Positions 692 to 24,600 of a DNA stretch of 64,000 bases are shown here, one piece after another (position 1 is the first letter of the stretch; the number at the start of each line of letters is the position of its first letter). The notes beneath the pieces were generated by a model that was given only the letters and a program-made list of their open reading frames with translations, searched no databases and had not been told where the DNA came from. The stretch is from Bugula neritina (lineage: Eukaryota > Animalia > Bryozoa): NCBI GenBank assembly GCA_964035545.1, contig OZ037765.1:25915504-25979503 (forward strand), written 5' to 3'. The position numbers and the translations under genes were made by a program.

Positions 692-3600
692 GTAAGTCTG
701 TCATTACGGCTATAATTTATTGTAAAATAAGGCATCGCAGCTTGAACATGAATTTGATTTCGGCAATAATTACATAATTTAGCAATTTTGTATTTGTAAA
801 AATCTATTTTATGTCCAACTCAGACATTTTTGGCATTTATTGCTTTTTTCTCATATTGTATTTACCTTTCTTATTTTGAAATGCAGACCTGTGGACTATT
901 CAGGTTTTTAAACTAGTAATTTAGTGTGAGAATATGATGCTACCTGAAACTGCTAAAATAGTGTAACTCACAGGAACTAGTGTCACTATTCATAAACGTT
1001 TAAATGTAAATAGTTTTTGTAGTTTTGGGAGAAAATTTGAATTGATCATAAAATATTAAGGCCTTGGTGTGGTAGCTCTGCTTATGCAATATTTAGTGCG
1101 CAATTAGCATTTACAAAGATGCACTAGTTTATGGGTAGGGAAAAATTCAGTTGTTGAGTTATTGTCACTGAATTATTCAACTTTCCGTTCTATTCTGATG
1201 CATAACTCCAATGTTACAATTTATTGCTGTTTTAGGAACTTATTGCCCACCTCATGGAAATGTCAGCAACTCAGTCAACTATACTAACATACACGCTGTT
1301 CACAACTATTCCAAAATAAATACTCAGCTATTATTCTCATGTGTTGATGGATATAAATTGAATACAAACACTGGTCCAACTGTTTGTGATCCTCGGACTA
1401 GAGCATGGACACCAGCCCTTACTTGTATTGGTAATGTCATTTTTAGTCTCTTCTATCAAGTCTAACATACCACTGGCTGTCTCATGTTCAGTATGCACAC
1501 ATATTTGTTTTTATCACAATTACTCTTGAGAGTGTGTATTTTCTTGTTTTGCCTCGTCTCGAGATTTTCAACTTGTGTTATTTAACGCTGTTCAACAACC
1601 ATAACATGTTAATGATGCGCTCAAGAATTATATTATACGCAGTTAATTCTTGTGATATGTTTACAGACATTGAATGTAGCAATGTCATACCGACGACGGA
1701 GAACCTGACAGTGAGCAGTGCCAACCGAGGCTATCTAGCGACAATAAACTACACGTGTCTTACGGGTCACTACTTCTCAGACAATTCCTCTGTGCACACT
1801 AGTGTCTGTGTATCCAGTGAAGATTGGTCTATTACTGAGCCACAGATATGTTCCCGTGAGTCATCATGTAAACATTCCATACTTTTAAAGTATGTTTTTC
1901 AGAGAGAACATAGGTATACATGTTTCTGTACATCCTCACCTATAAGCCTTAGGGCCACACGGTGCGTATTTTCGCATGCGAAAATTGAAATCACAAGTAG
2001 CAAAGGTGTCCACTGCAGTGTCAGTGATGCGTGATAAATAAAGCTTTCATTTTTAAATCGCACTCGCTTTCAATAAAACGCAATTTACTGGAATGTAGCA
2101 CTAAAATTAAGAGATTGGGCTCGCTGAATAATTACCAGCCAATTATGTGAAGACGACAGAGACAATCGTACTTGCGTTGAGAATGCTGAGCGACAAGTGC
2201 GAATGTTTTCTCAACGCGTACAGTGGACACCTTTGCTACTTGTGATTTCAATTTTCGCATGCGAAAATACGCACCCTGTGGCCCTAGGCTAACCGCTCTG
2301 CCCTGTTCGGGTAGCGGGTGGCTGCCAGAGGCCTCGCTCAATTAGGCTTTTTAACCTAACTCTGTTCTGACCATTCAGAATTTCTGTCATTACCTATAGA
2401 CTAGTTTGCCATTTCTTTAGATATCCAAATCAAATTTTAGATGGTTAGAATTTTTAAACTTGAAGCTAGACTTTTTAGCTAAGTGAATGTCAGAACATGG
2501 CTCTAAATTCTGCATAGTCTTAAAGCAGCAAATATTTGAACTAACACTGCTGCCGTAATTTTGCTTAGTTAGTAAGAAATAAACAGCGACTGCTTGTAAT
2601 ACAAATAGCAAACATGTAATTCAAGGTGGCACACAGAAAGTTTTTTTTATATTTTGTAAGTTCCTGTAAATATGAAAATAGTATTGGTGGCTGCTCATTT
2701 GTTTAGTTATATTATACAACTATTTGTACATAGTTATAATTAACATCATTTCTTGATTGTCTCTCTCAGCTATAAAGTGTGATGAGCCGGAGGAGGTAGC
2801 TGGTACAGACATGAATATAGTTGGTGTACATTACCCTCTGCCAGTACACTATGACTGTGTTCTTGGATATGCAATCAATCCCGGGACAACAATCTCTGGC
2901 CGTGAACGTCAAACAATGGAGTGTCTAGAGAATGGGGAATGGAACTTTACTGCACACAGTCCGTGTCTACACAGTGAGTATCATGGCATCTGATTGGAAA
3001 TGTGTTTTGAGAAATATAGGAGGTTTTGCTATGAATAGTTATACTGAAACCAAAGTGGTTTTAGTAAATCCCTTCATCGTCTTCAGGCTAAGTTAAGACA
3101 CAGATATGTTTATTAGTTATTTAGACTACTATATGGTGTTATCACTTCTATATCCAACTATTTCAAATGTGTTACAATTTCTTCTACTTGCTATTCTTAT
3201 GTTAAATTTACTCACTGTTTTGAAATTCAGTTTCAGGAACAGTTTTACGTAATTTATGTATATATTTAATGATTATCTGTCAAAAGCAGTTAAAAAGAAA
3301 TTAAAGTACATGTTTTATTAGCTTCATACTTGGTTATATTTACCTTGCCTTTAAAACTCATGTTTTTGCATGCTAAGTGAAGTTTTCTTTGCTTTTAATA
3401 TTGCATGTATTATATATTTTAACTCTTTTAGAAAAAGTGTGTCCAGTACTGAATATTTATGAAGCTGTTGGTAACACATCTAATATAGAGTATGAGACTG
3501 TAGTAGAGTTTACATGTAACACTGGATTTCTATTAGCTCATGGTAGCACTCAAGAAGATATGATTGCAACTTGTTTACACACAGCTCAGTGGGATAAAGT

Positions 3601-6600
3601 TGTACCAGACTGCAGAGGTGAGTGTAGAAGAAGACAATTTCTATATCCATGCAGGTTGCTGCTGAAATGTCGCTGTATTGTGCTGTGTAGGGGATGTGTA
3701 TTAACATAAAATTATAACATTGAATTCTATTGTACTGAACTGTAATTTATTTGGTTTAGTGTTGTTTTTTAATGTATTTAATTGTATTATATTTTGTTGC
3801 ATTTTATTGGATTCTCTTGTAGCTGTAATGCATTCTATTATATTATGTTATATTGCATTGTATTATGTTGTAGCTGTATTATATTATATTGTAGCTGTGC
3901 AGTGCACCAACACATCTGCTACATCAGCTAATCTAACAGTAGCTGTTGGTGATTTAAGTTATCTGTCATCTATAAACTATACATGTGATGATGGTCACTA
4001 TTTCCCTGATAACTCTACATTCCATTCAAGTATTTGTGATGCTGCTGAGACCTGGACACTCACAGGAGACCAACTCTGTAGTCGTGAGTTGAATATTTTA
4101 ATTTAACTCTAATATACTAATATTTTTTATTGGGGACTGTAATGCAAATTAACCATGAACAGTTTAATTTTAAATTAATTTTCTTTTGAATCAATAAGAG
4201 TTTCTTACTTTATGTGAAACTTCTGAGTGCAAAATATTTTAAGACACTTTTTACAAAATAATATAAATAAAAAGATTTTCGCATAAGGCAGTTTTTTTAT
4301 GCGCATAAAATTGTTGACGCCAATAATATACAAGCTTATGATTTACTTAGCACTACTTTATACCATCGTAAAGCTGGATATATACTCAATATACGCGAAA
4401 GTTATGTTCTGTGTAAAAATTTATATAATTTATGTGTAAGCAAAATGTTTAAAATATGTCATTTACGCTTTTAAGCTTAGTGGGTAGTGCAGAACTCTTC
4501 TATTAGAAAATCTATTCAGATCACTACTCAAAGTTGATTGAATAAAGATTTGAAGTCTTTCAGACTTTAGCAAACCTCTTAAAGATTAGACCTTTGAGTT
4601 ATCTCCTTTTTTTCACAGCTATAAAGTGTGATGAGCCTGACGGGGTAGCTGGTACAGACATGGATATAGTTGGTGTACATTACCCTCTGCCAGTACACTA
4701 TGACTGTGTTCTTGGATATGCAATCAATCCCGGGACAACAATCTCTGGCCGTGAACGTCAAACAATGGAATGTCTAGAGAATGGAGAATGGAACTTTACT
4801 GCACACAGTCCGTGTCTACACAGTGAGTATCATGCCAACTAATTCAGCCATATTGTAAATGTTCTTGCTTACTCTGTGGAGAACTCAGCTTAGCAGTTGG
4901 GAAGACAACTTTAATAATGTCCATTAGTTTTGTTTCAGTTCAAATAAATACTTTTTTGTATGTGTACAAAAGGGCTCCCGTTATAAAATATATTAATAGA
5001 ATGTGACTCACTGCAAGATTTTTAAGGCAAAGCCTGTTTATTGCTGAAAGTTGTTTCGTCTGCTAGAGAAGCAGGTGTGACAATAACCTATAATAAGCCA
5101 ATATCAATAATCCAACAACTCAAGTAATTGCAAACAATTTCAGCATACTGTATGCATTCAAAAGAGTTATAAGATAATGATAGCACCAACAATTGTACCA
5201 TAAATAAACTGCTTTATAATAGCAGACAACTATTAGCAGATAAATAATAATAAAGGTACATCTGATCAACAGTTGGGTAATAATGAAGGCAATTATATAC
5301 ATTTGCATAATTTAAGCACTTGAAAATAATTAAATTATACTGAGAAGCTAGAAATAAGGTTTTTTTGCCACAATTTTATCTTTGACCATAGTTTTGTTCC
5401 TTGATTTATTGTCACATATTTTATAATTATAAAAGTTTAGGCAAGTTGTGTTCATGAATTTAATATATTCCATGGCTGATCCAGTATTATGACTCTTTAT
5501 ATCAGTCATTTTTGGTAAATTATCTTTGCTTAATTGTGTTCTTCTTTGGTTATACTACAAGTATTTCCTCACCTAGCATCTTACTTATAAAGTGCCTTTG
5601 CTTACTGAATTTACTTGGTGTGTTGCTAAATTCAGAATTATATGTACACCAGGGTAAATATTATCTACGATGTATAATATGTGTAATATATTATTGATCT
5701 ATGTGTATTATTTGAAATATTACATATTTTATTGTTCACCACTGCGTATTTTAGAAAAAGTGTGTCCCGTACTGAATATTTATGAAGCTGTTGGTAACAC
5801 ATCTGATATAAAGTATGAGACTGTAGTAGAGTTTACATGTAACACTGGGTTTCTATTAGCTCATGGTAGCACTCAAGAAGATATGATTGCAACTTGTTTA
5901 CACACAGCTCAGTGGGATAAAGTTGTACCAGACTGCAGAGGTGAGTGTAGGAGAAAACAATTTCTATATTCATGCAGGTTGCTATTGAAATGGGCGTCAT
6001 TCCAAAGTTACGACCCCCAGCTAGATGGCCCCAAATATTACTCTCATATATATGTGTAGATGATATTAAAATGTATTTGACTAATTTAAACTTTAAAATT
6101 GAATGAATAGAATGTAGAAAAATAGTCTAAAAAATTACATTGTATTTGGATATGGCTTCAGTAAACTGTTAGAGCAATGGCTTCAATAAGTCATAATATT
6201 ATGCATATGGTTTCAGTTATACATGTACACCTGTGCACATGAAACTGTAACTTAGAATCAAATTTCTTTAAATTTAATTTTTTAATTCCAAGTGTTTTTA
6301 CGTAAATTCGTCTAAATTGAAGTAGTCCAGCAGGAAGTCGTCTAAGTGGAATATATTGATGGTCGTCTTTCTGAACTGAAACCGCTAAAATGTTGCTGTT
6401 ATATATTGTAGCAGGATGTCTATTAACATGACATTATAACATTGAATTCTATTGTACTGAACTATAATGGCAGGTTTTGTATTAAAACATAACATCATGA
6501 CCCTGTGTTTATAATTGTTTTCAACTGTAATGTAGTTTATTTTAGTATTGTATTATGTTGCATTTTATTCGATTCTCTTTTAGTTTTGTTATTTTATATT

Positions 6601-9600
6601 ATTGTATTATTTTATGTTGTATTATCTTATATTCTAACATAATACGTATTATATTGTAACTATGTAACATTGTATTATATTATATTGTAACTATGCAACA
6701 TTGTATTATATTATATTATAGCTGTACAGTGCACCAACACATCTGCTACATCAGCTAATCTAACAGTAACTGTTGGTGATCTAAGTTATCTGTCATCTAT
6801 AAACTATACATGTGATGATGGTCACTATTTCCCTGATAACTCTACATTCCATTCAAGTATTTGTGATGCTGCTGAGACCTGGACACTCACAGGAGACCAA
6901 CTCTGCAGTCGTGAGTTAATCTGTTGGTCATTTATACTAACTTTATTCTAGTTTATTAAAAATCAGATCAGTCTATTCTTATTCCATCTCATTTATATAA
7001 CTTGTATCTGCATCTTTTACTTAATAAACCTCCACAACATGTCATACTTTTAAAAATACAAGTATAAATCGGATTTTCTTAGCTCTGTGGGTATGGAAAG
7101 TTAAGCTGAGAAAGCACTAATTTTCATAGAGTACTATCCAATGGATAAAATCACTAATGCAATTATTTCATATTAATTTGTCAACACACATTTTAATGCC
7201 AATAAGCAATATATTTAGAAGAAAAACAATTTTTTTAATTCACATTTTAAATCCTAAAGATATGTTGTATTATAGCATTGTTACTGTACAAGCTTTAAAA
7301 AGAAAAACTATAAAAAGCTTTTAGTCTCTCTGTACTACTCAACCATTAATGTGTTCTATGCACCATAAAACTTGTTTATTAAAATCCTATAAAATACAAT
7401 GTAGTGTCTCAAATACTTTGATGTCTGGAACTATTTTTTACTATTAAACAAAATTAAATTTTAAGAGATTATTTTTAAAACAGGAAATTGTTAACAATAT
7501 AATATACAATATGTAAGACTGGTATTGTTATTTATTAAGTTTTATTTTACATATATGTGTGCTTGTATTGGTACCACAAAGATTGCAATATTTTAATTCA
7601 ATTTCCATCCAGTTAATTCAATTCTCATCACAGTTTAAATTCAATTCTTGATAATGATCTCACATGATTAAAAAGATTTAGTGGCCGAAATACTTTTTAC
7701 AGCACATAACCTGGATTTAGAGATATAAACATGTTGCAATTCAATATTTACATTAAACAGCCATCCAGTGTCCTGAGCCTGCAATTCTGACAAACACTAA
7801 CAGGACTGTGGTTGGTACACACTTCTCCCATACTGTAAGCTATTTGTGTGACTTGGGCTATGCTACCTCACCGAATAATACCGCCAGTGGCCAGGAGCTC
7901 CAAGTGATGACCTGCCAATCTAATGGAAGCTGGTCTATTAAACCTCAACCTTGTCAATTCAGTAAGTTTTGCTAGAAACTTTATACCAGATAATAAACTG
8001 AAACCTTGTTGAAATCTTATCATTTAGCAGCTGCCTGCATTTGATCTCTTTTTGTGAAATAATCCAATCTTCTGTGGATTGTTGTGATTTCAAGAACTTT
8101 CTTTATGCTAATAGCATGTGATATGTTATTATAATATAATATATTTCAATTGTTTTTTAGAAAAAGTGTGTCCAGTACTGAATATTTATGAAGCTGTTGG
8201 TAACACATCTGATATAGAGTATGAGACTGTAGTAGAGTTTACATGTAACACTGGATTTCTATTAGCTCATGGTAGCACTCAAGAAGATATGATTGCAACT
8301 TGTTTACACATAGCTCAGTGGAATAAAGTTGTACCAGACTGCAGAGGTGGGTGTAGGAGAAGGGTATTGCTTTAACAATCTATGATCATATTGTATTATG
8401 CTCTGTTGTGTTTTATTGTATTACATTGCACTGCAATGCATTGAATTCTGATACAGCTACATATATTATATTATTTATGTTGTATTATATTATATTATAT
8501 TATATTATATTGTAGCTGTACAGTGCACCAACACATCTGCTACATCCGCTAATCTAACAGTAACTGTTGGTGATTTAAGTTATCTGTCATCTATAAACTA
8601 TACATGTGATGATGGTCACTATTTCCCTGATAACTCTACATTCCATTCAAGTATTTGTGATGCTGCTGAGACCTGGACACTCACAGGAGACCAACTCTGT
8701 AGTCGTGAGTAATTATTCATTTCTAAATATTTTGTAATAATGCATATGTATTCTTTAGGTATAAAATGTTTTGTAATCATATACATATTTACATGAAGCT
8801 TTGTGTTTTGTGGAAATGACAGAAGCTAGTTAGCTTGTGCTATGTTTTAACAAATATATGGCATATTCTTTGCAAATTATTATAATGCTACATTCTACAC
8901 CTTTACATTACATGCTATAGTGTTTTATCTTCCTATGGTATAGTGTGGTGTGGTGTTACATTTTTATATTGTTTCCAGCTGCCAGATGTCCTGATCCCCA
9001 GCCTGGTGTTTTGTCTAACATGACCATATTGGGGGTGTACTACAACCAGACTGTGGAGTATGAGTGTAACTACGGGTGCTCAGTCAACCCTCTCAATCAC
9101 ACAATCACTGGTGCTGAGCCTATCACTGAATTGACTATAACTTGCAAGTCAGATGGCACCTGGGACTCTGAGGCTATAGTTTGTAAATGTAAGTCATTGT
9201 TACTGCATAATATAATATTTCCAACACAGCTCTAAGCTAAATTTTGCAAGTACAAATGGTATTTATTTTAGTATCTTGATGAAGCATGTTTTTTATCAAA
9301 AATTTATAGGATTCACTAATTTTGAAAATCAACTATGTCTTGTATAGATTTTACCTTGTGCATGGTTGAAAAAATTAAAACATGAAACGTGCTAGAATTT
9401 GTTATTCGTCTCTATCAATGTAAGTATGTAGCCATGTATACATTTTCTAAAGCTTGCTTTGAAACATGTTGAATTATATCAAATATTTATAGTTGTTTTG
9501 CTACACAAGATACTAAAATCTATAATGCAAATATTAGTGTCAAACTTATGTTGGATTAAGTTATTGCTTTTTCCAAATACAAAATGTGCATTATGGCATA

Positions 9601-12600
9601 TTATGTAATTTAAACAAAAGTAATATTGACCAAGGTGGATAGAATTTCTAGCTTATCGATTTTTATTTGAAGTAAAGTCGCTCCAACATTTGTGCCATCA
9701 ATAGTTTATTCAAATGAAAGATTTCTATATTGTAAAATTTAAATGCGTTATATGATACGTTTGATTGCCCAACTTAAAAATACATTAGCTTGTATTGCTA
9801 ACGTTTGTGTAAGAGACATGTTTTGTACATTCACCAAGGAATCAATATGTTCCTGTCAAGAGCCTACTCAATATAAGAAATCCTTGGTATACTTTTAAAA
9901 AAAAGTAGTTATGATCGGGTTTGAACCATAAGCCACTAAAATGATCAAAAGGGTAAGACCATAGCCCTAACATAACAACGCTATGAACTGTAACTTTATT
10001 AAGAGTTCATTCCAAACTACACGTGTGACTTTTTCCTATGCGTTCTGATATGTATATTTTGCTGGTGCAAGTAAAGTTGTATACAAATATATTATTTAGG
10101 GGTGTAATTGAAAATTTTGATATTTTAATACACTCTTACCTGTTTACCTACTTAAAAAGTCAAAGCTAGGTGGTGAGCTCTTAAGCTATGCCACCACCTA
10201 GCCTTCTCGATTCAGGATAATGCAATGCTGAGTTAATGTCCTAAAGATTCCAAGTCTGGATGCAAACAATTTTATTCATTACACTTGAGTCTCATCATTT
10301 TTATGTTTGATGATTTAGTTTTTATAACTACATATGCAAACCTAACTTGTTCTGTTAGTTACAACCTTTTTAGTTGTCATTTGAAGCAATCGTGTTTAAT
10401 TGCGTTCACTATCATGTGTTCTTATAACAGCCAATTATGTTATATTCAGTTAACGTATGTCCTGAATTGGATGTTCTTGGAGGAGTGCCAAATACAACTC
10501 TCACCCACTTCTCAACTGCTGTATCCGTATTATGTGATGTTGGATTCAAAATGGCCAACGGTGTATCACCATCAGATATGATCTCCACTTGCCTAGCTAA
10601 TTCATCATGGTCTAATGACATTCCAGATTGTGATTGTAAGTTTATGTATTATTAAGTAACAGAGAGAGAAACAAGATAATATTAAATGATGTAATATTGT
10701 TATGTTCTCGGTATAACCCCCATGTGTACGTTGCTCTCCCGTAGGTAGGGTCAGATGAAATGTCGCATTGTCAACTGTAGAGTTAAGTCATAAATTATAC
10801 AACATTACCAGAAATGCACCTGAACACAGTAAAGTGTAAACTAATGCGTCAAAACTGTTTAACAATTATATTTCGAACAAGTTCATGTTATCATAAGTTT
10901 GTGTATTCTGTTAAATACTCTAAGCTTAGATATTCTAATAAAACATATTATATTGTTTAAATAAAGGTTTTGTTCTGATGAAACTAAAAATTAATTCTAT
11001 TCACTGTAATTACATTGGTCTAACCATCGCTGCTTTATTTATTTCTCATCTCTGAATTTTTAGTCAAGTTGTGTGCTTGTATGTATATTATTTGTTTGTA
11101 TTTTGTAGATTATCTCTGTCCAGACAATATGACAATGCCCAACTCTCAGCTATTTCTTGAAGGAAGACATTACTTAGATTGGGCTACATTTGTTTGCGAT
11201 CCGGGTTATGAGTACGCTGACGGAACTAGTGAGCAGCAGAGTCAGTGTGTGCAACATTCAGACACTGGTGTGGCGTGGCTTCCTTTTAGTCACAATGAAT
11301 GTATCCGTAAGTTAATTTGTGCATACACGCCAATCAGTTTTCATATCAATTTGTAGACTAACAAAAAAAGTTTATCTACAATGTGCAATACGCATAGTTG
11401 ATAAATTAGTATGATTTATTTAAATACACATGTGTAAGTAAAGTTTTGTTACATTAGGTGGTAAAGTTTTGTTATATTAAGTGTTAATCACATGTAACAT
11501 TTGATTATTCATTGATTTCAGGTGTGAACTGTGGTTACAACAACTTCTCGTGTGTGGATGAAATGTACGTCTACAGCTCACCATCTGGCTATGTTAACCA
11601 ATCTTCAGACCCTGCAGATTACACCTTTTTCGAAGATCAGCTGGAAGTGTTTGTTAAACCAAAATATATGCTGGTGCTGTTTATGTCCGACGGGAGTGAA
11701 GAGCATCTGACTGGGCATGGCTATCTCTCCTGTAACCACACTTCTCGGTGGAATGATGCTGTCTTCATCAACTGTTCGGGTAAGTGATTTTTCATTTTTT
11801 TTGGTTATACCTTTTACTCATTTTTGTTGAAAAACCAGAAAGCTGTAGTACCGCAGTGTATTATATAACTTCTGTCATATATAATGTATGCTATGTTTTA
11901 TCTCCATTGTCATTTGAGTATCTAGTCTTTCATACTGCGCCGTCTTTCTCTTGCATTTTTCTCTCACTTAGTTTTTGTAAAGCTAAACATTTTGCCATTT
12001 GTTATAAAGCATTAAGCTAAAAGCATGATTACTTTTAGTGTATGTTTCATATTTTGCCTACTATCTCATGCCATCATTAACATTTTCTCATCCCTCATTC
12101 GCACGACGATTGTGATTACATAGCATGTATGACTGTGTCTGTGGGTATCCTGTGTGGTGTAGTGTGCTATTACGTGGTTGTATGCTCTCTCTGGTGTCAG
12201 TGTGCGCCTCTAATACTGAAACTTGTGTCGATTAAAACTTGGATCCTGGGATAGAACTCTGTTACTACAGTGATATGAGGCAAGCTCTTGGCTAACACAG
12301 TGATGCAGGTATTTAAAGAAACTAATGCTGGCTATTGGTTATAGCTGCATACATTTTATTCTTTTATTTTATCAGTGAACTTATTTATTTTGTCAATTTT
12401 CACTTCAATTAAATATTAAGAAACTTATCAAAATAATGACATATTGATGTTTTTTTTGAACCATGGCAGTACTTTAGAAAATTAATTTAAAACTGCCAGC
12501 TATTTGCTATTTTTGGAAACAGTTAAAAGCAATTTCCTGACATGTCCTTAGAGTACTTTAACTGATCTTTAGTCCTGCTGAATGTTAAAAATGTGAGATA

Positions 12601-15600
12601 GCTTGCTCTATATCTGAATATTATAATAGACTGTTGTTCTTTTTGTGATGTAGTAATATATTGTATTCTTTTCATTGTAGAACTTTATATGTAGTATATA
12701 TATACTTAAGTTTGTATATATAGCTAAAATATGAAGTTTTTATAGTTGCATTTATAGTTATGTAGTATGCATATATTAAAATTACATTCCTGACTGGGGA
12801 TTTTCATCTTAGAAATGTTTTTAAAAATCTGGTGACAAATGTTTCTGCTACCAACATGGCTTAAGGCCTGTGATGCAGTTCGGAGTTAATTCATGACATC
12901 ATTAATGAGATATGGTGACATAGAGCACCGTGAGCATATGCCAGGCAAGCATCCTTGGATTGTTTTCAATGCTACTGCAATGCAAGTCTAATGATTGCAA
13001 ATACATATAATGGGCATAAATTTTGATAATTACAATTTTTTATTTTTCTTCTATTCAAAATTTTTTGCATATTTGCAAGGGCTTTAATTTTGAATGATGC
13101 CGGTAAGTTCAACCAGAGCAATAATAACTTTCAAGGACAGAAACATGTGGAGCTGCTATTTCTAGGTAAATTATATTATATTGCATTTGTGTAGTTCATT
13201 ATATTCAACCTGATAAATATCAGCTAATAAATTTAAATAATATAAATGTCGTACGAAATATCAGCTAATTATTGCCTGTCACTTGTCACAATTAGAATTT
13301 ATTGTTTTAATATAATATTGCTTTGTGTTACACTGCTGCACTGCATGGCTAATACTTTATACGTAACAACTGCTGCTTTATGGATAATGATGCCTTTATT
13401 TGAAGTTCGTGTTCATTTCCTTTGGACAGTTCAGGTTTGATTTGCATCAATAATGCATACTATTATAATGGATAGATGAAAACCGCTGTGCTCATTCGAG
13501 CTGTGGCAGCCTAAAGCCTCAACATTTATTATTTTTTATCTCATGCAGTTCTATCTATGATCTTCATATCAAAATGCAACTTTTTGCAGTAAGTGTATTT
13601 TAAGTTTCTGGTGAAAAGCTTTATTTTACAGCTTCTGCCTGTTTTGTATCTTAATTTGTATTTGCTTATTTTGTTATATTTTTATAGTGTGTTTACAGTT
13701 TGTGTTGCCTTTGTAATATAGAAAATTGCCTACAAATGTGCAATAATTTATGGAAATTTTTAGATTGGATTGTTAACTCTCCTGTACTATTCGACTATAC
13801 CAACAAGTGCTGCAGGTAAGACTTGATGACAATCTTGTTAATTTTTAACTTGTAAAATTTTTTCACAATTTTTGCTTAGATAGTCAGCTTGCATTTCAGA
13901 AATAATTGCCAAAATCTGAATTGAAGATATCTAGTAATAGCACAGCACATGCTTTAGTATATGTATAGTAATATTTATTGCTGTGATGGTCTCTTGTATG
14001 TGTAATTGTGCTTTTTACAGAAGTTTTATATGAAAATTCATGTAACAGAACCTACGGGATTCCTGGATATTTTACGCAGGGCGATGGCAGTGATTCAGAA
14101 TGTGTAGAATCTTGCTCAATGCAGGGTAAAAGGTAACTACTTTGTTGTTTTTAATACTATGTAAGCTGCTGTCATAATGTTGCTGTATTGCTCTACCTCA
14201 AAGCTAAGATTAAATACAAATAGAATATTTTATTATTATTTATGTGTTTTTTTTTAATTAAACTTGTACAAATTTCACATAAAAGTTTTAATAATAATAA
14301 TTTTTAAAATAGATTGATTTGTATAATTTTTAGACGTTTCAGACAGTACTCTATCTAGTCAGCAAGGCTAAAATGTTATTCTTCATATTTTTAGCCTGTC
14401 ACTTCTCTACCAAGGCTTGTTTTGTTTCTGTGGAGACTCTGTGTGTGAGGAATGTGGCGAAGGTGACTCCATCCCAACTTTGACAACCGGCCCTATTTGG
14501 CCGTGCACCAATGAGACTGCCAATAGCTATTTCCTCACAAACCAGACATATCTCGCTCCCAACTTCATGTTTGGTATGTATTCAGCAAGTTTTGGCAAAA
14601 GTCTTGCACTGTTTTTGCTTTGGTAATGTATTGTTCAATTTAATGAATTTGTTACTGCTAGTTTTTTGAATGTCTGTTAAATTATGTCAAATTTTAAAAT
14701 AACTTTATTTTGGTGTTTTGGTAATCACATATCTTGTTTTATTTGTGAATAAATTGAGTATTTATTGTAAATGATAAAGTTCATTGCTTTAACCTGTTTG
14801 ATGTTTGCCTGGTTAATTTGCTAATGACTGAAAATAGTTAGTACGTATTAGAAGTTGTACTAACAATAGAATAAATGTTGTTGAAGTATCTCAAGTGTTT
14901 ACTAGTTGTAAGTTCGAAAATGGTATTTTCAACCACCACATCTACAAATAGCACACTACCAATCGCCAACAGCTATTGTCAGACCAATTTTATTTATCCA
15001 ATTATTAATAGATTAAAGTTATGGATTTATGCCAAGATATGCACTTCTTTGTAGAAATTACTCAAGAGTCAAGGTACACAGTAAGTCTGGGATTGACTGA
15101 AAACCCGGCAGAAAATACGAATGGAATAATAGTCGAAGTATATTCATCTGATGATATGTCTAATGTTTTCTATCCTCCCAAGCTGCACATGTTTTCATTT
15201 GCATCCTTTGAGTCAACATATATCTTGCGGACTATTAATGAAGTGGAAGTAGAGATGTATGCTTACAGGTATTTACTATAATCTCCAGTGCTGAAGGTAT
15301 TTCTAGCATTACATGACTTATTCAATGACTATATTAAACAACTATGTGTATATAATATTGACTTTTGTTGTTGCAACTGTTTTTATTTTTTGGTCTGAAA
15401 TTTTTTTTAAATATTTAAATGAAAACTTAAGGCATCACTATGAGAGCTATATAAAAAAATTTGAAGTTTAAAGTCACATTTAAATTGATTTATTCTGCTG
15501 ATTGTTTTTATTGCACAGATGAAAGAATTACGTATCTTGTATATATTTGGTCAAAATTTCAATGAGCACCTGAAAATGTTTTTGCTATTAAAAATGCCAT

Positions 15601-18600
15601 CTCTGATATTCGTTTAGAGAAAATTTTATGGAGTCTCCGTATGGGGAAGTTCCCCTGCAAGGTAATCCGATGGACTGCGTCTTGTCTGGCCACTGTCAAA
15701 GAGAAACTGCCGTCGTTCCTAAGGTACTTCACAACTCAATATTCCTGAGAAAGTGTATTGCATGCTATGTAATGTCAAATGTTTATTCTTTGTCGAGAAA
15801 TTTGTTTATTGAAATGTCAGCTATACTTTTTATAGGCCTTTTTTATATGTCAAAAGTATGCAAACATAAAATGCATGTGTACTTTATTTTATTGCTAATT
15901 TTCTAATGTTATGTAACTTTTTCAGAGACACTTAGGTTTGCTGGACGCAATGAAAGTGACATGCGATGAACATGCCTGGGTGAATGAAACATTCACTTGT
16001 GAGGTAACAGTTTATGGTGAAGCTTTGACTCTGGATGTAGATTTTGGTGATGGGTTGACAGAATCTCTGCATAGTCAAGTTAACATCTTAGGTATGGGTA
16101 CTTTTACTACTTCTATATGTAGAATATAGGTGACATTTTGGTGTAGTGAAATGAATAAGATTCATAAGCGCATCAATACAAAGTGGGTGTTAGTGGAATA
16201 TTGTTGTTGAGTTATTGCAGGCACTGACTAAGCCTTTTAGCAAACTGCTGTATAGATATTGATTTTTATTTCTAACAATTTGACATAAAGTATTAAAAAT
16301 TCTATAAATTTAGTTTTACTGAAAGAAAATTATTGATTTGCCAGTACCTACGTTGGTTGATATCCTGAACTTTATTTATTTCAAGTTAACAACGTGACTA
16401 AAATTATTGCAATCCCCTATAGCAACAACCCTGTTTATTGATTTTCAACTAGAAGTTCGTTATACTAGTTTTTAATAATGGATAAGTTACATTGAGTATT
16501 GATTTTGTTTCTTTGTTCTGTATAATTTAAAATTAACTGCTTAACTTCCCTTTTATACTGTCACCTTTAGCTCTACATGTTTTTATCCAATAAAAATTAT
16601 AAGCACACCACTAAGCCTTATGTAGCATAAATCTAAACTATATCATTTACTTCGTTAAAATTTTGTAATGCATATAACTTGAATTAGATGCTATTTCTGG
16701 GTACAGAACTGTACATATCTTGTATTAGACTCAGCAGAGGTGGTGATTGGTTACACTGATACAAAGAAATACTTTAGTGATGCATCAGAGATAGACATAG
16801 CCAGAACAGAAACTGAGCATAGCTACAGATTGACCCACAGACTGATAAATGACCATGCTTACATACACTCTGTAGAATACAGCTATGCTGATGTTGGCAC
16901 ATTTGAAGTTTCTGTAAGTTTTTTTAGAAATTAATAAAAAATAATACTTCTAACTAATGCACTAAGATATCATGGGGTTTTGAAATAGAAGGAATCTTTT
17001 AAATCTGCATAAACCAAGAATAAAGTTGACATTTATAAAATGTGTAAATATTCTTTGGTTGCATGTTTAATTAGATTAAGATTTCCAACACGAACATTTT
17101 ACATCTGGTAATTCCGTCGGGCTCCCTGTTAGTTTTGTTCATGCAAAATGCAGTTTAGTGGCTGTTTTTACCCAACTTGTATTTCATTCATCAAGATTAA
17201 ATTGTACATACAGCTTAATATATAAAAAGTCATTATGTTTTTATCATCCTATATAATAGTTATTGTAGCAGTTCAGGCGTTTTTTAATTACTGCTTTACT
17301 TTTATTTTAACCTATGTGTGGTACTGACTATATGCTTTCTGATTCTCTAAATTTTCACCAAGCTGTTTAAAATTTCAAATGTTCACTTATGGATAACCTC
17401 CATAACCATTGTTCTTAATAATTTAAGTTATAAAAACTATTTTATTGAAGCCTCAATAATGCAGATGCATTAAAATGTTTTTATTCGCTAAGATCTAGGT
17501 AGTGCTATTGGTCCAACTCTAATGTTAATATAACATTAAATATGTAATTATGTTTTAAATGTTAATCATTTTTGTAGATTTTCCGGCCAGTATGTCCTGA
17601 CCAGTTTTACTGCCGCAAGTCTGTCCAGTGTGCAGCAGATAAGAAAGCGTGTGACGCCATGAATTTCAACTCACAAGCTTGTCCATCAGGATCTGTAAGT
17701 CTGGTCAATTTTAATAGTGCTGGTCAAGAATAGGCACTTAAATTTGTAAGGCATGGCCACTTTTTAAAAGTGGAGACATAAAAGCTAGAATATAACATAG
17801 GTTTTTGCAACTTTCTGAATAATTGGAAACAAGTTTTGTAAAAAAAAATAGCAAGAAAACAGCAAAGAAATCCTCACCAGCTGCATTCACAGCATAACAA
17901 TTTTAAGATATTTTAAAATTTACGTGCTTCAATCTGCATATAATATAATAGCACCATGGCATAAAATGCTTCTAAGCAAAAGCTTCTTTTGGCCCCTGAT
18001 ATAAAATAATTACAGGTTGAAAAAGCTTTGGTACAATAATTAATTTGAGGTAGAGTTTCCCACCTCTGAAATTTAGTATTTGGGTTCACCTTAACTTTGA
18101 AACTATGTGTAATATGGGAACACACTACTTTTTCAAAATTGATATTTATTACCGCAAACTTTGTGCAGAGCATGGTATCATTAAGGTTTATTGATAAATA
18201 AGTTTGAAAAAAAAGTATCATGAGAGATTTTTTTGTCGCGAAAACAATATAACAAGCTCATGTAAATAAAAAGAATAGATTTATTAAGATGTATAATAAT
18301 TTTTCTCATTCAAATTAAATCCACTCAGATGTTGCATGTTATTGTCATCAGATTTGGAGCTTAAGTCAAAGAGAGTGTGTGGAAACGACTGGTGGATCAG
18401 GCAGACTTGGTAAACCTAAATTCAAATCGATGTTAACACCAACTGTTTCCTACGAAGTGGTTCATACTCTTTCAATAGACATGTCACAATCAGGATTACC
18501 TGCCAATGTGTCTATAGTCCATAAATTGGAAGATTTTATTGAGGTTAGTATTTAGCCTAGGTACCCCCATGTTACTGATGTTACGGATGAGACAACTCTG

Positions 18601-21600
18601 TTATACTACTTGATTTATTTTTACATGTAAGCTATTATATATCGAGTTTGTTGCAGGTAACGCCAGGTGATGTAATTGCAATCGAAGTTACAGCAGGTAG
18701 TCTACTTATGGCTGAAATACCTGAGAGTCAGATGATACCTTGCATCTTTCAGCAAGTGACCACTCTCGACTGCTCACACGAACCCCTAGTAGCTGCCCAC
18801 ATGTACACAGCATCTATATTCACTGTAAGATTTGCTTTCTTCCTTTATAATATACTAGCAAGTTGTTTCAGTTTTCATAGGTATTGTTTTCCACGCTGCC
18901 TGAAAAGTCTATTCCGAAGACTGTATGTAGCATATTGAGAGAAATTACAGGCAGCAGAAAACTTATGGTGGTGTCTTACAATTGAGCATAACAAGATTCT
19001 CCTAATTTTAGGTGTCCCACACCTACTTAGAAGACTGTAAAGATTTCACCTTCCAAGTCGATGTTTCGGTTGACAGTGTTCTAACAAACACTACCACACA
19101 AACCATCAGGCCTTTGAGTCGACTTAGCAACGTCACTCTTACCAGTCCTACAGCATACAGCATCACGTCGTATCCTGGGAGAGGAATTTTCCATGATGGA
19201 CCAGCTTTGAATTCTGACGAAGAAGATGGAATGATTATTGGTAAAACACCTGAAAAATTACAGCATTGTGTTCATCAAAATGCTATAAGAGTTCTGTGTA
19301 GCGTTAATAGTTGTTGTGATTTATCTTCTATAAGGTAGAACATGTCAGACAAACTTTCAAAACAGCTGTAATAAGAAATAAAAATGAAAAACCTTCTCTA
19401 TGTTTTGCTTCAATTGTTATGAAACCTAAATAATAATTTAGACTTTTGGGTTTTTCAGTGGCTACCAATGAGTCAGCTGAAGTGTTGGTCCCGTGGCACC
19501 CTGCGTATTGCGATTCCAAGTAAGTTTATTTGTTGATAGTCAAAAGTTTCAGTGCCTTCTCTGTGCAACATTGTTATAAGCCGTATGCTGTTGCTCATTG
19601 TGGTGCTTCGTAGTAGCTAGTGTATTGTATATTAAAAAGTATTTGTATTTAGTGGTCTTGCCAATTTGAAGTACTCTAAGCTCTCATGTTTGAATTTACC
19701 ACACGTACTCAATTCATAGTTTGGTCTCAGTTTCTTTTATGTAAAGGGTGTAGGCCACTTCTGTGCTGATGGAGAAATGAATCCCAAACAATGGCTGTAT
19801 GCCGAGTTAGTTACTTACACTATTATAGAATTAGTAAGTTCAATGTTGTTACTAGATACTATTGGCTATGGGGGGATGGTGCCTCTAATGACTATGAGTT
19901 GACAAATGCTAAGAATAATTCTCATAAATACACTGAGCCAGGCACATACAACATCACATTGCTGACCGAGACAGAAGGAATAAACACAACCACCATTGTG
20001 AGTTACACTAAAGGCTTATACAGTTATAAATTATTAATAATAGTGGTTTTTAAATATTTTTTTCACATGTTCTGTGCTGAAAGTTCCAGTGCTGTCTCTA
20101 CGTTATTTTTGTTTATCAAGATGACAATAAAACTTGAAGACATGATGATGGAATGCATGTGAATATATTTTGATTTATTGATACCTGCTAGTCTTGGGGC
20201 TCTTTGGTGCCACTTTATAAAAAACAGCTGAGGTGCATTGATTTGTAGACTCTAAGGCTTTTGTTATAAAAAGCATTTTATTTTATCCTATGGAAAATTA
20301 TGGAAGCATTATTTTGGGTTTGCTGAATGTGTTTATTTAAATAATGGAAAATATTATCTTCGCAGAGGGGTGTTTTGGTAGAAACTAAAATAGCCGGTCT
20401 TTCTTTGGATGGAATGGCACCAGCCAATGTATTTGGTGAATCTACGTCATTCTCAGTTTCACTCACTGAAGGTAATGACTCTCTTACTAAATTATATGAT
20501 AAAAATTATGATAATGTGAAAAAATTGAACCAAACCTTTCTTTTAAACGTGTTGGTAGTTTTTGTATTATATTAATTGATTAAATTGAAACCTCACAACT
20601 TTTACATTATACTCTGGAAATTCACTTTACAAAAGTTACTTAATTTACACTTGATTATCTGTCTTTCATACCATTAACATTTTAGTTTATTACAGGATCT
20701 CAGGTAATGATAAGCTTTGACTCGGGGAGTGAATTTACAGACACACTTGAACACACCGGCCCATCAACTCAGATTGATTATACATACCCAGATCCAGGCT
20801 ATTATTTGATTGCCGTAACGGTTTCCAATTTTGTTAGGTGAGCTATCTGTTGAGACAAGTTGTAGATGTATTATTTTCCCTTACTATCATAATTTTATGT
20901 TAATCTTAAATTTCACTATTATAAAAAGTTAATATATCCTGACAGTTTGTGTCTCAGTTATGCAATAAGTTGCGTAACACAATAATGCTTTTATTCCGCA
21001 CGCAAGAAAATACTTGTGCTGTATGAGTGAAGGCCCAACTTTGTCTTACTGGAATATGTAATATGTTTCAGCAACCAATCACTAGAGTCATGGGTGGCAG
21101 TTGAAAAGAAGATTGAAGGTCTGGCAATAAGTTCAGATCTAATACCATACAACATGGACACACCGGGAGCTGTTGTGGTGACTTTGACTGATGGAACTCG
21201 GGTTAATTTTACGTGTGACATTGAAGGATCTCCATGTGTAGATTGGGATGTAGACTGGCAGAGTAATAGTGGTAGGTACTTGTATACAAATGGATGAATA
21301 GATATTAGATTATCTTCAACATTTTTTGATGATGTCATCTACTTACTACCTTGAAGCAGAAATGTGTCATAATTATGTTACTCATTGATTTATACAGTAT
21401 GGATCAGATTGTCACACACTTGTCATTATTGCAGCAGAATATACAAAATAATATTGTCAGTTTACTTTATTACATACTATTTATAAATCAATTTGTTGAA
21501 ACAGCCTACATGTAGTCAATAAATACTTTTTCTGCATATTCTATACTGAATTTTTACAGAACACCTGTGTTTAAAAATACACATATAACTTTTGTAAAAC

Positions 21601-24600
21601 GCTGTAAGAAGTTTCAAGTATATGTGATTTGTTCACAATAGGTTTTGTTACATTTGGCCCTGGTAACACTAATGGTCCTGGAACCTATTTGCTGACCCTC
21701 ACTGCTGTAAACATGGTCACATCCCTAGTCAGCCTCTCCTTGCCTATCGATGTGTTACGTGAAATTACTAACCCAAGCACCACAGTGATAGGAAATGGAG
21801 TGGCCGGAAATTTTCTTGTGGAACCTCTGCATACAGTAGAATTTATTGTTTCTCTTGATGAGGGTTCTCGAGTGACCCTGAAAGTAACCTGTGATGGTGG
21901 CTTTGAGGTAGGCTATCTGTATGAAGTATAACGCTTTATCTGTATTATTCATACATGTGTATAAACCATGTTCTACTCATATTAAAACACTTGTTAACTA
22001 GACAAGTTATTTGACATTTTAACTCATAAATATTTGGGGCTTTTTTGTACGACATGCAAGTTGAAAAACTGGCATTAATAAATGTATATGTTCTTACAAT
22101 TTTCATGTTTTAATATATTGGTTACTTTCAAAAAGTTACTTGTTGCTATTTTATAAATTTTTAGAATGAGGCATACGTGGAAGATATAGTCGACGGAGAT
22201 ATGACTGTTAGCATAGAATTCACCACTGATGATGTGTATGTGTGTAATGTTGCCCTCACTTCCCCCATTGGTTCAAATTTCTCCGAAGCCTATACATTTA
22301 CTGTACAATATCCCATAAAGGACGTTGATTTTGGACTGGCAGATTTCGTGACAGCAAACGATCCTGTTTATGAAGAAGTTGTGACATTAGCCTTTCCAAC
22401 ATACAGCGAGGCTTTAGCATTTATCCTAGTGAGGTCTACACAAACGAATTTACCCACCAATTGTTCGTGGTCCATCGATTTTGGTAATGGCATTATTGAG
22501 ACATCGCAGGAATTTCTCACTGAAGCAGGGGAACTTTCACCAAGCTTTACTCTCATCAAAGCGTTTACACATACTTACACTGAGGGTGGAAACTACACTA
22601 TAACGCTGACTTTGTCTAATGACATAACTGGCAACTATACCATCTCCTATGATGTGGTAGTGTATGAAGAAATATCTGGTGTCACTATTGCTAACATTTT
22701 TCATATAGATGTAAGTAAATTTAAAACATAAAACTATTTTTTTACGAAATAATTTCAAAGTGTGTTTTGGCCAAAAATTTGGATTTGCTGTTCTAAATAA
22801 AATTGCTTCATTGTAATTTTATTAAGCTTCAAACTAATCATTATAATTAAATTATTGAAGTATTGAAATCATATTTTGACTTTTATTATTTTATAATATT
22901 ATAGCCACTGGAAGCAGGTGTCACACTATGCGTGTTTTTATTAAGACTAGCATTAGAGTGCGATTAATAGCTACATAGAAACAGGCTTCATTGTGCAACA
23001 CAAAGCTCTCAAAGTTGTGGAAAGATAACTCTTAATAACAGCTCTATTTCTCATATCTCAATTAGACTAAAAGTCTTCTTGTAAAGTTCGAAAACTAAAT
23101 TTTTTGTGCTATTATGTGTGAATAAATAGAAGACCAGTTTAACTTAGGTTGTCTCCTTCAAGTAATAATGCAAAATTTTCTGTTTGTCAATGCTTTTTGT
23201 TGAAAAGAAAAGATTACATGACAATAATTATTGAGTTACAAGGATAATTATTTATCTCTATTCTAATTTTAGGAGGCTGGAAATACTTGGCCTTCATATC
23301 CAAACCAGGAAAAAAACAGCTATTCATACGTGCTGCACGAATCAATCACTGATCCACACTATCAGTACGAAGAGACTTTGTTATTTGAAGGTGCCGTCTC
23401 AAGAGGCAGTCATATGACGTGGTCGTGGAACTTTGGAAGTGGCGATGTTGTTACAGGATGTGAGTAATTTACCACTGGCTTAAAACTGTTTGATTGTGCA
23501 TGCAGTTTGTAGTTTTAGCTATAGCTGTGTTGTATCTATAAGTTCTCAATGCTGTTGAAACTCGATTCAGCAGTAGTTGGCCTAGCTTCTAGTCATCAAT
23601 ATATATATGATTTGTAAATATTAGAATTGAATCTGTTGGGTTAGCTTTGACTGTGCACTTTTGTTTTTTATTTTCAGCCGACTGCAATACTACAGAGTAT
23701 AGTTATTTTGACAAAGTAGACCCAGGAACTTATCAAGTCAATTTGACAGTATCAAACGCGAATAGCTTTGTTACTGTCTACCAGGAAATTGTGCTGCAGC
23801 GAAGTGTTAAAGACGTCCGGTTAATGACTCCACCTGAGATCACATTTGCAATAAACACCTCCGTATCCTTCATGTTACATGGCTCTGATGCCACTGATGT
23901 CTGCTATTTGATTGACTTTAAGGACCCATTAGCTGGTAAGCTCTGCTACAATGGCAACTATGTTGATCTAAATCTTTTTTCCATAATTTTATGCAGTTAG
24001 AAATAGCTTCTGAAACATCTAACCTTTGAAACATAGAAGGCTGTGAGCTAGTTGTTTATTTATTTATTTAATGAACATTATTTATTTATCAGAATTGTAA
24101 CGTTTTAACTGATTTTTTGTATTTGTAAATTTAACAAGTTAGTTGTTTATATTTATTATTATTTTTCCAGAAAAGAACTTCTATGCTCAAAGCCAGGATA
24201 ATTTGTGTTCGAAGATGTTCAGCAGCTTGTATGAGATGACAACTCCTGGTACATTTGACCCGCTGATTGATGCAGACTCTACTTCAAATATATCGATGAA
24301 GTTCATGACCCTTGGACAGTACATGATAGAGTACTACATAGTCAATGTTGTTTCATATGGTGTACTCTCCCACAAGTGAGTTTTATCTGCTTTTTTAAAA
24401 AGTTTATTTTGTGCCATAAATAATATTTTAGTTGATATATTGATATAAAAAAAATTTTAATTGGGAACGTAATTTATAACTGCATTTCATGGTCTAATCT
24501 TCATCTATTGTACAGGTTAAAATAGCAACGATCAGTTCTATGTTGACTCGTGTACAATTTTATAGAGTTGGGATCACCACTGGCCCTTGTGAATTTCCCA

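Follow-up and report, generated by a model that had tools for sequence, protein, structure and literature searches.

This locus raises the question of how a polycystin-1-like gene of Bugula neritina begins: with a signal peptide of its own, or as the continuation of a Sushi array that lies just upstream on the same strand. Both are contained in the window analyzed here, a stretch of 64,000 nucleotides from chromosome 1 (assembly tzBugNeri2.1). The original prediction was of an unusual modular receptor arrangement at a single locus, with a separate Sushi-encoding neighbour offered as the alternative. That alternative is judged the better reading. A start with its own signal peptide is upheld for the polycystin, but the fused architecture is not, as an ordinary boundary fits better; judging from the sequence, the region around 13.5 kb most likely separates two adjacent + strand genes.

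Three Bugula lineages were compared, namely that of the window, a 2020 draft assembly (L004), and the Logan/JGI contigs L011/L012, with a divergence among them of about 11–13%. In a DNA sequencing run, the only run found to contain this region, one contig spans 10400–15400 with zero differences from the window. Sequence features, their conservation, and domain content were established directly from these data, and the features are listed in Table 1.

Table 1. Features of the window at and around the boundary between the Sushi array and the polycystin-1-like gene.
Feature	Position	Strand	Remarks
15 Sushi/CCP exons	1236–11779	+	All phase 1-1; 3′ part of upstream mosaic gene
Last CCP-like exon	11522–11779	+	258 nt, 4 Cys and Trp, no Pfam match
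Consensus donor GTAAGT containing in-frame stop TGA (11785–11787)	11780–11787	+	Direct reading
Hydrophobic ORF in phase with 11779	12124–12254	+	Judged no conserved coding exon
Conserved non-coding block	13254–13360	+	TAATTA and two TGTCAC motifs; 96–98% identity vs. ~89% background
Invariant block, 117 nt, read as putative core promoter	13426–13542	+	Octamer, TATA-like box, Inr
Polycystin exon 1	13574–13588	+	ATG and 4 codons (MQLFA), AAAATG context, donor GTAAGT
Polycystin exon 2	13764–13815	+	Rest of predicted signal peptide: hydrophobic core, ...TSAA cleavage motif; ends in phase 1
Polycystin exon 3	14021–14132	+	First half of WSC-like domain, phase 1 start; tblastn of P0151, exon mapping
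Polycystin exon 4	14395–14573	+	Second half of WSC-like domain, CFCGD motif
Remaining polycystin-1-like gene	15055–48615 (3′ limit approximate)	+	Pfam on exon ORFs, P0151 mapping

The downstream gene is a member of the polycystin-1 (PKD1/REJ) family, having PKD repeats and REJ together with PLAT and a polycystin/channel end. Beyond exon 4, Pfam places PKD repeats at 19770–20159 and 22165–22728, REJ at 25891–26181 and 28468–28812, PLAT at 40295–40669, Polycystin_dom at 45325–45723, and PKD_channel at 47377–47643; this part of the gene also has the channel transmembrane segments. The short form alone already displays the canonical module order of polycystin-1. The assignment of exons 3 and 4 as WSC-like is looser. 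Neither of the window’s “WSC” segments matches Pfam exon by exon, nor do exons 3 and 4 as spliced in the public orthologue (E ≤ 10); their nearest named Atlas clusters are WSC (score 0.84–0.85), a weak language-model lead only. The intron between these two exons is placed where most Bugula WSC exons are split. The WSC-like exon used as a query retrieved nothing from the protein collection, and the exon at 22165–22728 retrieved no annotated protein of this assembly and otherwise mostly prokaryotic PKD-domain proteins. An ENA metagenome contig (L005/L006/L009) carries a farther orthologue of about 35–38% identity that does not represent a paralogue from the Bugula neritina genome; this contig stops before the WSC and signal-peptide exons are reached. 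Two loci from the metagenome scan, with 59% GC, were set aside as spurious.

Two small exons with their splice sites, and a phase-1 acceptor at 14021, had been predicted ahead of the WSC-like domain, and direct reading confirms them all. The acceptor and donor of exon 2 are TTTTTAG and GTAAGA, and the acceptor of exon 3 is TTTACAG. When spliced, exons 1 and 2 encode a signal-like peptide of 22 residues whose frame is continuous with that of polycystin. Its hydrophobic core begins at residue 3 and crosses the exon 1/2 junction, with a best 10-residue Kyte–Doolittle mean of 2.7, in keeping with the roughly 7–15 hydrophobic residues sought right after a start codon. The predicted cleavage site, T-S-A-A before E, is identical in the other lineages and places small, uncharged residues where they are looked for, S at −3 and A at −1. 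There is no positive charge in the n-region, with no K or R among the first five residues and a net charge of 0; a positively charged n-region is common in signal peptides and is not obligatory.

All three Bugula lineages retain the ATG, the two donors, the acceptor, and the reading frame. Exon 1 has a single synonymous change, with GTAAGT or GTGAGT as its donor, while exon 2 has two synonymous and two non-synonymous substitutions, too few altogether to show purifying selection, and also the only indel of the mini-exons, which is of 3 nt and in frame. When both strands of the window were scanned (128 kb) under criteria chosen post hoc, the two-exon signal-peptide-like combination occurred only here. 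The proposed signal-peptide-like start in frame with polycystin is borne out by the conservation in three lineages, by the use of exon 2 in a public gene model, and by the promoter-like invariant block upstream. As a real translation start with a predicted signal peptide, the mini-exons are therefore well supported. Translation would begin at the ATG at 13574, and the mini-exons would provide a cleavable signal peptide, cut as predicted after SAA and before E. The mature protein would then present the WSC-like domain from 14021, followed by PKD repeats, REJ, PLAT, and the channel domain.

The block immediately upstream of the ATG exon is the longest exact run among 23,030 aligned bases. It contains a perfect octamer, ATTTGCAT, at 13440–13447, a TATA-like TATAAT at 13464–13469, and an Inr, TCATTC, at 13492–13497, with its A at 13494, 80 nt ahead of the ATG. 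The pair was sought as a TATA-like box lying 28–33 nt upstream of the A+1 of an Inr (TCAKTY), and this one has that geometry. By itself, such a pair is expected by chance about 3.5 times per strand and is not rarer than expected here. The promoter reading carries weight because the pair sits in the invariant block, just before the ATG. We infer that transcription would most likely start near 13494, at the Inr, which lies 30 nt 3′ of the TATA-like box. The second conserved block, 13254–13360, is a likely promoter-proximal regulatory element, to judge from its motifs and identity. Rfam gave no match in 11700–14100 or in the whole window.

The gene has a counterpart in the public record. KAF6020745.1, “PKD1 [Bugula neritina]” (P0151), from the draft GCA_010799875.2, is the orthologue in a sibling lineage, and its locus is collinear with the window at about 87–89% nucleotide identity. 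The model was predicted by AUGUSTUS with the help of transcriptome hints and is not itself a cDNA (PMC7576161). Its signal-peptide exon 2 and WSC-like exons 3 and 4 are those of the window, the Sushi array does not form part of it, and it ends after 1194 residues, with REJ and PLAT placed in a second model. The conserved ATG exon at 13574 is not used. Instead, P0151 has a first exon of 15 nt (MSICE, with a GC donor) that is not conserved, the window having GTG for its ATG and L011 a 9-nt deletion. As that exon lacks an ATG in the window and is deleted in L011, the exon at 13574–13588 is taken as the conserved exon 1. With residues 1–230 of P0151 as the query, neither spliced transcript fragments nor other species were found in the protein collection. 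For annotation, the gain is that the Bugula polycystin-1-like gene, which the public model splits in two, would receive its correct first coding exon.

What, then, is the Sushi array? Pfam Sushi matches several of its 15 exons, and the array is collinear with that of the other Bugula lineage. It is only the 3′ third of a mosaic gene of the C-type-lectin/WSC/Sushi kind that exceeds 35 kb; Lectin_C and WSC exons of this gene run on for more than 30 kb upstream of the window. The start of this gene was sought and not found. The 15 Sushi exons of the “WSC plus 15-Sushi” extension first described are real, but the extension itself is far larger, given the lectin and WSC exons upstream. Elsewhere in the genome, at least 149 WSC exon matches lie in large arrays, WSC and Sushi occur together on chromosome 2, none of these lies beside the other REJ loci, and the lectin/WSC/Sushi gene type recurs at loci without polycystins. 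Our proposal is a separate upstream gene for a very large secreted protein assembled from mucin-like, C-type-lectin, and WSC modules and 15 Sushi modules, with the polycystin start lying 1.8 kb downstream of that gene. We infer, as the probable state of affairs, two separate transcription units, the polycystin-1-like gene having its own promoter.

The upstream gene may end in either of two ways. The last CCP-like exon is single copy in the genome, with about 96% identity between lineages. Its 4-Cys/Trp spacing and its 1-1 phase fit Sushi; an AF2 single-sequence model (pLDDT 45) is unusable, and the exon as a query found only the sibling-lineage genomic ORF in the protein collection. The donor at 11780 is invariant across lineages, within an exact run from 11692 to 11792. 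The segment 11780–11787 may be either a used 5′ splice site or a read-through end, and the upstream gene would accordingly end in ...NCSGK at the stop at 11785–11787 or in a terminal exon, short and unconserved, that lies upstream of about 13.1 kb. It had been remarked that no transmembrane segment or clear terminal coding exon is visible for the Sushi array, and indeed no conserved in-frame terminal exon was found in 11795–13560. With no such exon found and a perfect donor at 11780, 14021 is still a compatible acceptor for the upstream gene.

A variant of the two-gene explanation, in which a short 3′ exon further downstream, and not read-through, terminates the upstream gene, is tenable although unlikely. 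As candidates for such an exon we considered the hydrophobic 12124 ORF, an anchor of the tail or GPI type, and tails behind the acceptors 11972, 12376, 12654, and 12813. It would be unusual for a perfect 5′ splice site to stay unused within a 3′ UTR, given U1 binding, and several AG acceptors with pyrimidine tracts, leading to tails of 7–43 residues, are kept in both lineages. However, none of the candidate tails is conserved as protein, the tail at 12813 differing at three of its seven residues. The ORF from 12124 is hydrophobic in all three lineages, but as a transmembrane or terminal exon it was rejected: its acceptor, at 12123, is weak, with a purine-rich tract, it has a 4-nt indel and lineage-specific stops, four of its five substitutions are non-synonymous, and it has no paralogue. 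In a different account there is one gene with two promoters, a distal one giving a giant lectin/WSC/Sushi-stalked polycystin by a join of 11779 to 14021 that skips the mini-exons, and a proximal one at about 13.49 kb from which the short form, separate signal peptide included, is made. The Sushi exon does join 14021 directly in frame (G+AA=Glu), as had been noted, 11780 is a perfect donor that does not vary between lineages, and no conserved terminal exon was found for the Sushi array. Moreover, the ectodomains of the PKD1 family vary and often have C-type lectin and WSC modules (PMC1934368), and in one earlier case separate polycystin models had to be merged (PMC8846589).

Nevertheless, an in-frame join from 11779 to 14021 is to be expected because all 15 Sushi exons are phase 1-1; the compatibility is a class property of such exons. 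Exon 2, despite its strong splice sites, would have to be skipped, since a Sushi-initiated transcript that includes it or the ATG exon runs into a premature stop, as a check of the joined reading frames showed. The fused protein would also be longer by more than 3,000 residues and would have two WSC-like domains. Mosaics of the WSC/lectin/Sushi type are present at many loci that have no REJ. We regard the two-promoter gene as improbable. Slightly less credit still is given to its specific product, a polycystin-1 channel subunit whose stalk would exceed 3,000 residues and combine mucin-like, C-type-lectin, WSC, and Sushi modules. This product would be translated from a transcript with the 11779–14021 join, started at a distal promoter lying over 35 kb upstream, and would exist besides the proximal short form. 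If true, the fused form would be an unusual route to a lectin-type ligand-binding stalk on a polycystin; nothing found here points to it. The claim that one locus yields both a short polycystin and a long Sushi-stalked form therefore finds no support, in view of the phase class, the stop caused by exon 2, and the larger, separate gene type upstream. That there is a single long gene only, with the mini-exons as chance look-alikes and the invariant block as an intronic enhancer, is very hard to credit. The mini-exons are short, and their substitution pattern is statistically indistinguishable from neutral. Against this, no second such combination turned up in the 128 kb scanned, all three lineages retain the ATG, three splice sites, and the frame, the indel being in frame, the orthologue model uses exon 2, and the TATA/Inr geometry lies 80 nt upstream of the ATG.

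The invariant block, as a putative promoter, offers a concrete starting point for building reporter constructs in a phylum where regulatory data are few. The locus is also a warning against fusing the polycystin with its lectin/WSC/Sushi neighbour, from which a spurious new domain architecture would result. Nagy et al. 2011 pointed out that adjacent same-strand genes with extracellular modules can fuse on paper to give chimeric architectures (PMC3927609); this is a caution from the literature and not a test of fusion transcripts in Bugula.

The polycystin 1 of Nematostella vectensis (OK338071) is an invertebrate relative that, like the Bugula protein, has WSC (WSC-like in Bugula), PKD, REJ, and PLAT, and is without LRR, C-type lectin, and LDL-A (PMC8846589). 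Two adjacent polycystin gene models of Nematostella were proved by RT-PCR to be one gene (PMC8846589); in contrast to those merged models, the upstream neighbour in Bugula is a different type of protein. Regulatory motifs are present around the Nematostella TSS (PMC8846589), whereas the POU-IV consensus is missing from the Bugula conserved block, which has only the generic octamer. No Sushi module has been reported in vertebrate polycystin-1 (PKD1) or in the sea-urchin SpREJ6/7/10 (PMC1934368). Differing from these proteins, the Bugula gene has no LRR cap that could be found, and its WSC-like domain is too diverged for Pfam. What it has in common with them is a large type I ectodomain and the same series of elements: signal sequence (predicted in Bugula), WSC (WSC-like in Bugula), PKD repeats, REJ, PLAT, and an 11-TM/channel-like end (PMC1934368).

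The polycystin gene very probably starts at two mini-exons that encode a signal peptide, and their coordinates, donors and acceptors, together with the acceptor ahead of 14021, were all borne out on direct reading of the sequence (GC about 33% over the window). The segment 10400–15400 is contained with zero differences in one 16.7-kb contig of a DNA run, and the assembly is therefore sound at this place. Spliced, the mini-exons give a 22-residue signal-like peptide with the C-terminus ...TSAA, followed by Glu. The window was scanned on both strands for two-exon signal-peptide starts. The criteria were an ATG exon followed by another exon ending in phase 1, splice signals of similar quality, a hydrophobic core, and small residues at both −3 and −1. 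The mini-exons were the only match, a result that serves as a control and carries no formal probability, the scan criteria having been chosen after the case was known.

Features of the boundary region and of the polycystin gene (window positions)
Feature	Position	Strand	Details
Last CCP-like exon	11522-11779	+	then GTAAGT, in-frame TGA 11785-11787
Second conserved block	13254-13360		TAATTA and two TGTCAC motifs
Octamer (perfect, POU)	13440-13447		ATTTGCAT; inside invariant block
TATAAT	13464		inside invariant block 13426-13542
TCATTC	13492		A at 13494, exactly 30 nt after TATA
Polycystin exon 1	13574-13588	+	ATG at 13574, AAAATG context, donor GTAAGT
Polycystin exon 2	13764-13815	+	acceptor TTTTTAG, donor GTAAGA, phase-1 end
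Exon 3 start	14021	+	preceded by acceptor TTTACAG
Pfam PKD	19770-20159, 22165-22728		exon ORFs
Pfam REJ	25891-26181, 28468-28812		exon ORFs
Pfam PLAT	40295-40669		exon ORF
Pfam Polycystin_dom	45325-45723		exon ORF
Pfam PKD_channel	47377-47643		exon ORF

A representative search led to KAF6020745.1, ‘PKD1 [Bugula neritina]’ (P0151), a model in the 2020 draft assembly. The contig that carries it, L004, runs collinear with the window, and the identity of 89.5% across 23,030 aligned bases, introns included, marks it as a sibling lineage within the species complex. The Logan and JGI contigs L011 and L012 are a third lineage, about 4–8% from L004. The ATG exon is kept in all three lineages with one synonymous change and a donor of GTAAGT or GTGAGT; exon 2 varies between lineages by one Leu codon, inserted or lost in frame, and by substitutions, two of them synonymous and two conservative. 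Selection cannot be proved from such small counts, although every critical site is kept. P0151 shares exons 2 and 3 with the originally predicted model and differs in exon 1, a 15-nt exon with a GC donor at 12930–12944. As a conserved start this exon was rejected: its ATG is GTG in the window, and in L011 9 nt are deleted at this place. P0151, an AUGUSTUS prediction with transcriptome hints (PMC7576161), is supportive but is no cDNA. The public annotation of VXIV02003147.1 (GCA_010799875.2; L004:10001-32214) splits the polycystin gene into models of 1194 aa (PKD) and 1746 aa (REJ, PLAT), and leaves the Sushi array, in the 10 kb upstream of them, without a gene call.

By its domains, the gene downstream of 14021 is polycystin-1-like. 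Between the window and L004, its exons have a pS of 0.136 and a pN of 0.036; silent sites have diverged about as far as introns, and the protein is under purifying selection. The predicted WSC label of the 14021 exon fared less well, as exons 14021–14132 and 14395–14573 gave no Pfam match, either singly or in the public orthologue after splicing; a language-model look-up gives a weak lead to WSC clusters, and the intron between them sits where most WSC exons of the genome are split. A 37-kb animal contig in metagenome assemblies, L005/L006 (ENA ERZ4903308 NODE_97; also ERZ23487988 ‘BRYA16-1’), probably from another bryozoan, carries a collinear polycystin-1 orthologue at about 35–38% identity and breaks off immediately ahead of the WSC and signal-peptide exons. 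Matches of a metagenome scan were dismissed as spurious. In a polycystin intron, 103 nt (16432–16534) are identical between the two Bugula lineages, ranking fourth by length among exact runs in 23 kb; the segment has no Rfam match, and the public model does not need it as an exon. Further along the + strand, 53200–64000 holds an FHOD-type formin gene, whose N-terminal exons resemble FHOD1/3 (Pfam FH3_FHOD1-3 at 61232–61621, 26.0 bits, just below the 27.4-bit cut-off); in or next to it, at 58900–59600, is a long hexanucleotide-type tandem repeat whose six frames are all open (YSG, TVP and HYI-type runs).

Upstream, the predicted 15 Sushi exons (1236–11779) were confirmed by exon boundaries and, for several of them, by Pfam Sushi; all are in phase 1-1. 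The extent of the predicted “WSC + 15 Sushi” extension was too small: C-type-lectin exons alternating with WSC exons, plus a Thr-rich mucin-like ORF, continue on the same strand for at least 30 kb upstream of the window, so a very large mosaic gene is present, of which the extension makes up just the 3′ third. The ORF, 268 codons with a long Thr/Pro-rich run, lies ahead of the lectin/WSC exons on the + strand of the upstream stretch L016 (7347–8150; G000:C1:25892850-25893653) and may be the 5′ part of this gene; neither a start codon nor a signal peptide could be found for it. WSC exons are massively expanded genome-wide: Pfam matches number at least 149 and form large arrays on several chromosomes, with dense tandem arrays at C4:23.06–23.08 Mb, C5:3.6–3.83 Mb and C3:15.15–15.9 Mb. 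In most of these exons the split falls at one and the same profile position, about 37/38. WSC and Sushi exons occur together on chromosome 2 (3.66–3.82 Mb), and none of the four other REJ loci adjoins a WSC array; lectin/WSC/Sushi mosaics therefore form a distinct gene type in this genome.

Two separate genes, with variants that disagree only over the upstream gene's 3′ end, are the best reading and a probable one. The original prediction had one locus giving long and short forms, the long one joining 11779 directly to 14021. Exons joined by script confirm that this join is in frame, but it carries no weight because 15 of 15 Sushi exons end in phase 1. The signal-peptide exon also has the phase-1 end usual for extracellular modules. 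When exon 2, or the ATG exon via the AG at 13548, is included, a Sushi-initiated transcript hits stops, so to be productive a long form would have to leave out an exon whose splice sites are good. Fusion would also add more than 3,000 residues to the protein. Searches exon by exon or with P0151 found no spliced fragments in the protein collection. In favour of a long form, the 11780 donor has a perfect sequence that does not vary between lineages, and no conserved in-frame terminal exon was found within 11795–13560, which leaves the upstream gene without a demonstrated 3′ end; a hydrophobic ORF from 12124 was rejected as terminal exon (weak acceptor, 4-nt indel, mostly non-synonymous changes). 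There is also a precedent in Nematostella, where two polycystin models were shown to be one gene (PMC8846589). On balance, a functional long form is unlikely. The locus is an ordinary gene boundary, and the predicted start, though very probably a real translation start, is most simply the polycystin gene's normal rather than “internal” one, a useful annotation correction.

Across the entire window/L004 alignment, no exact match is longer than the 117-nt block at 13426–13542, which ends 31 nt before the ATG. Its TATA–Inr pair is of a kind expected by chance about 3.5 times per strand, and takes its weight from lying within the most conserved block, with the ATG 80 nt further on. An ATGCAT lies 5 nt downstream of the octamer. 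Neither promoter-like block matches an Rfam family, and the two are most naturally read as a putative core promoter with proximal regulatory sites. The Bugula invariant block lacks the POU-IV consensus, in contrast to the polycystin 1 promoter of Nematostella, where that consensus is known.
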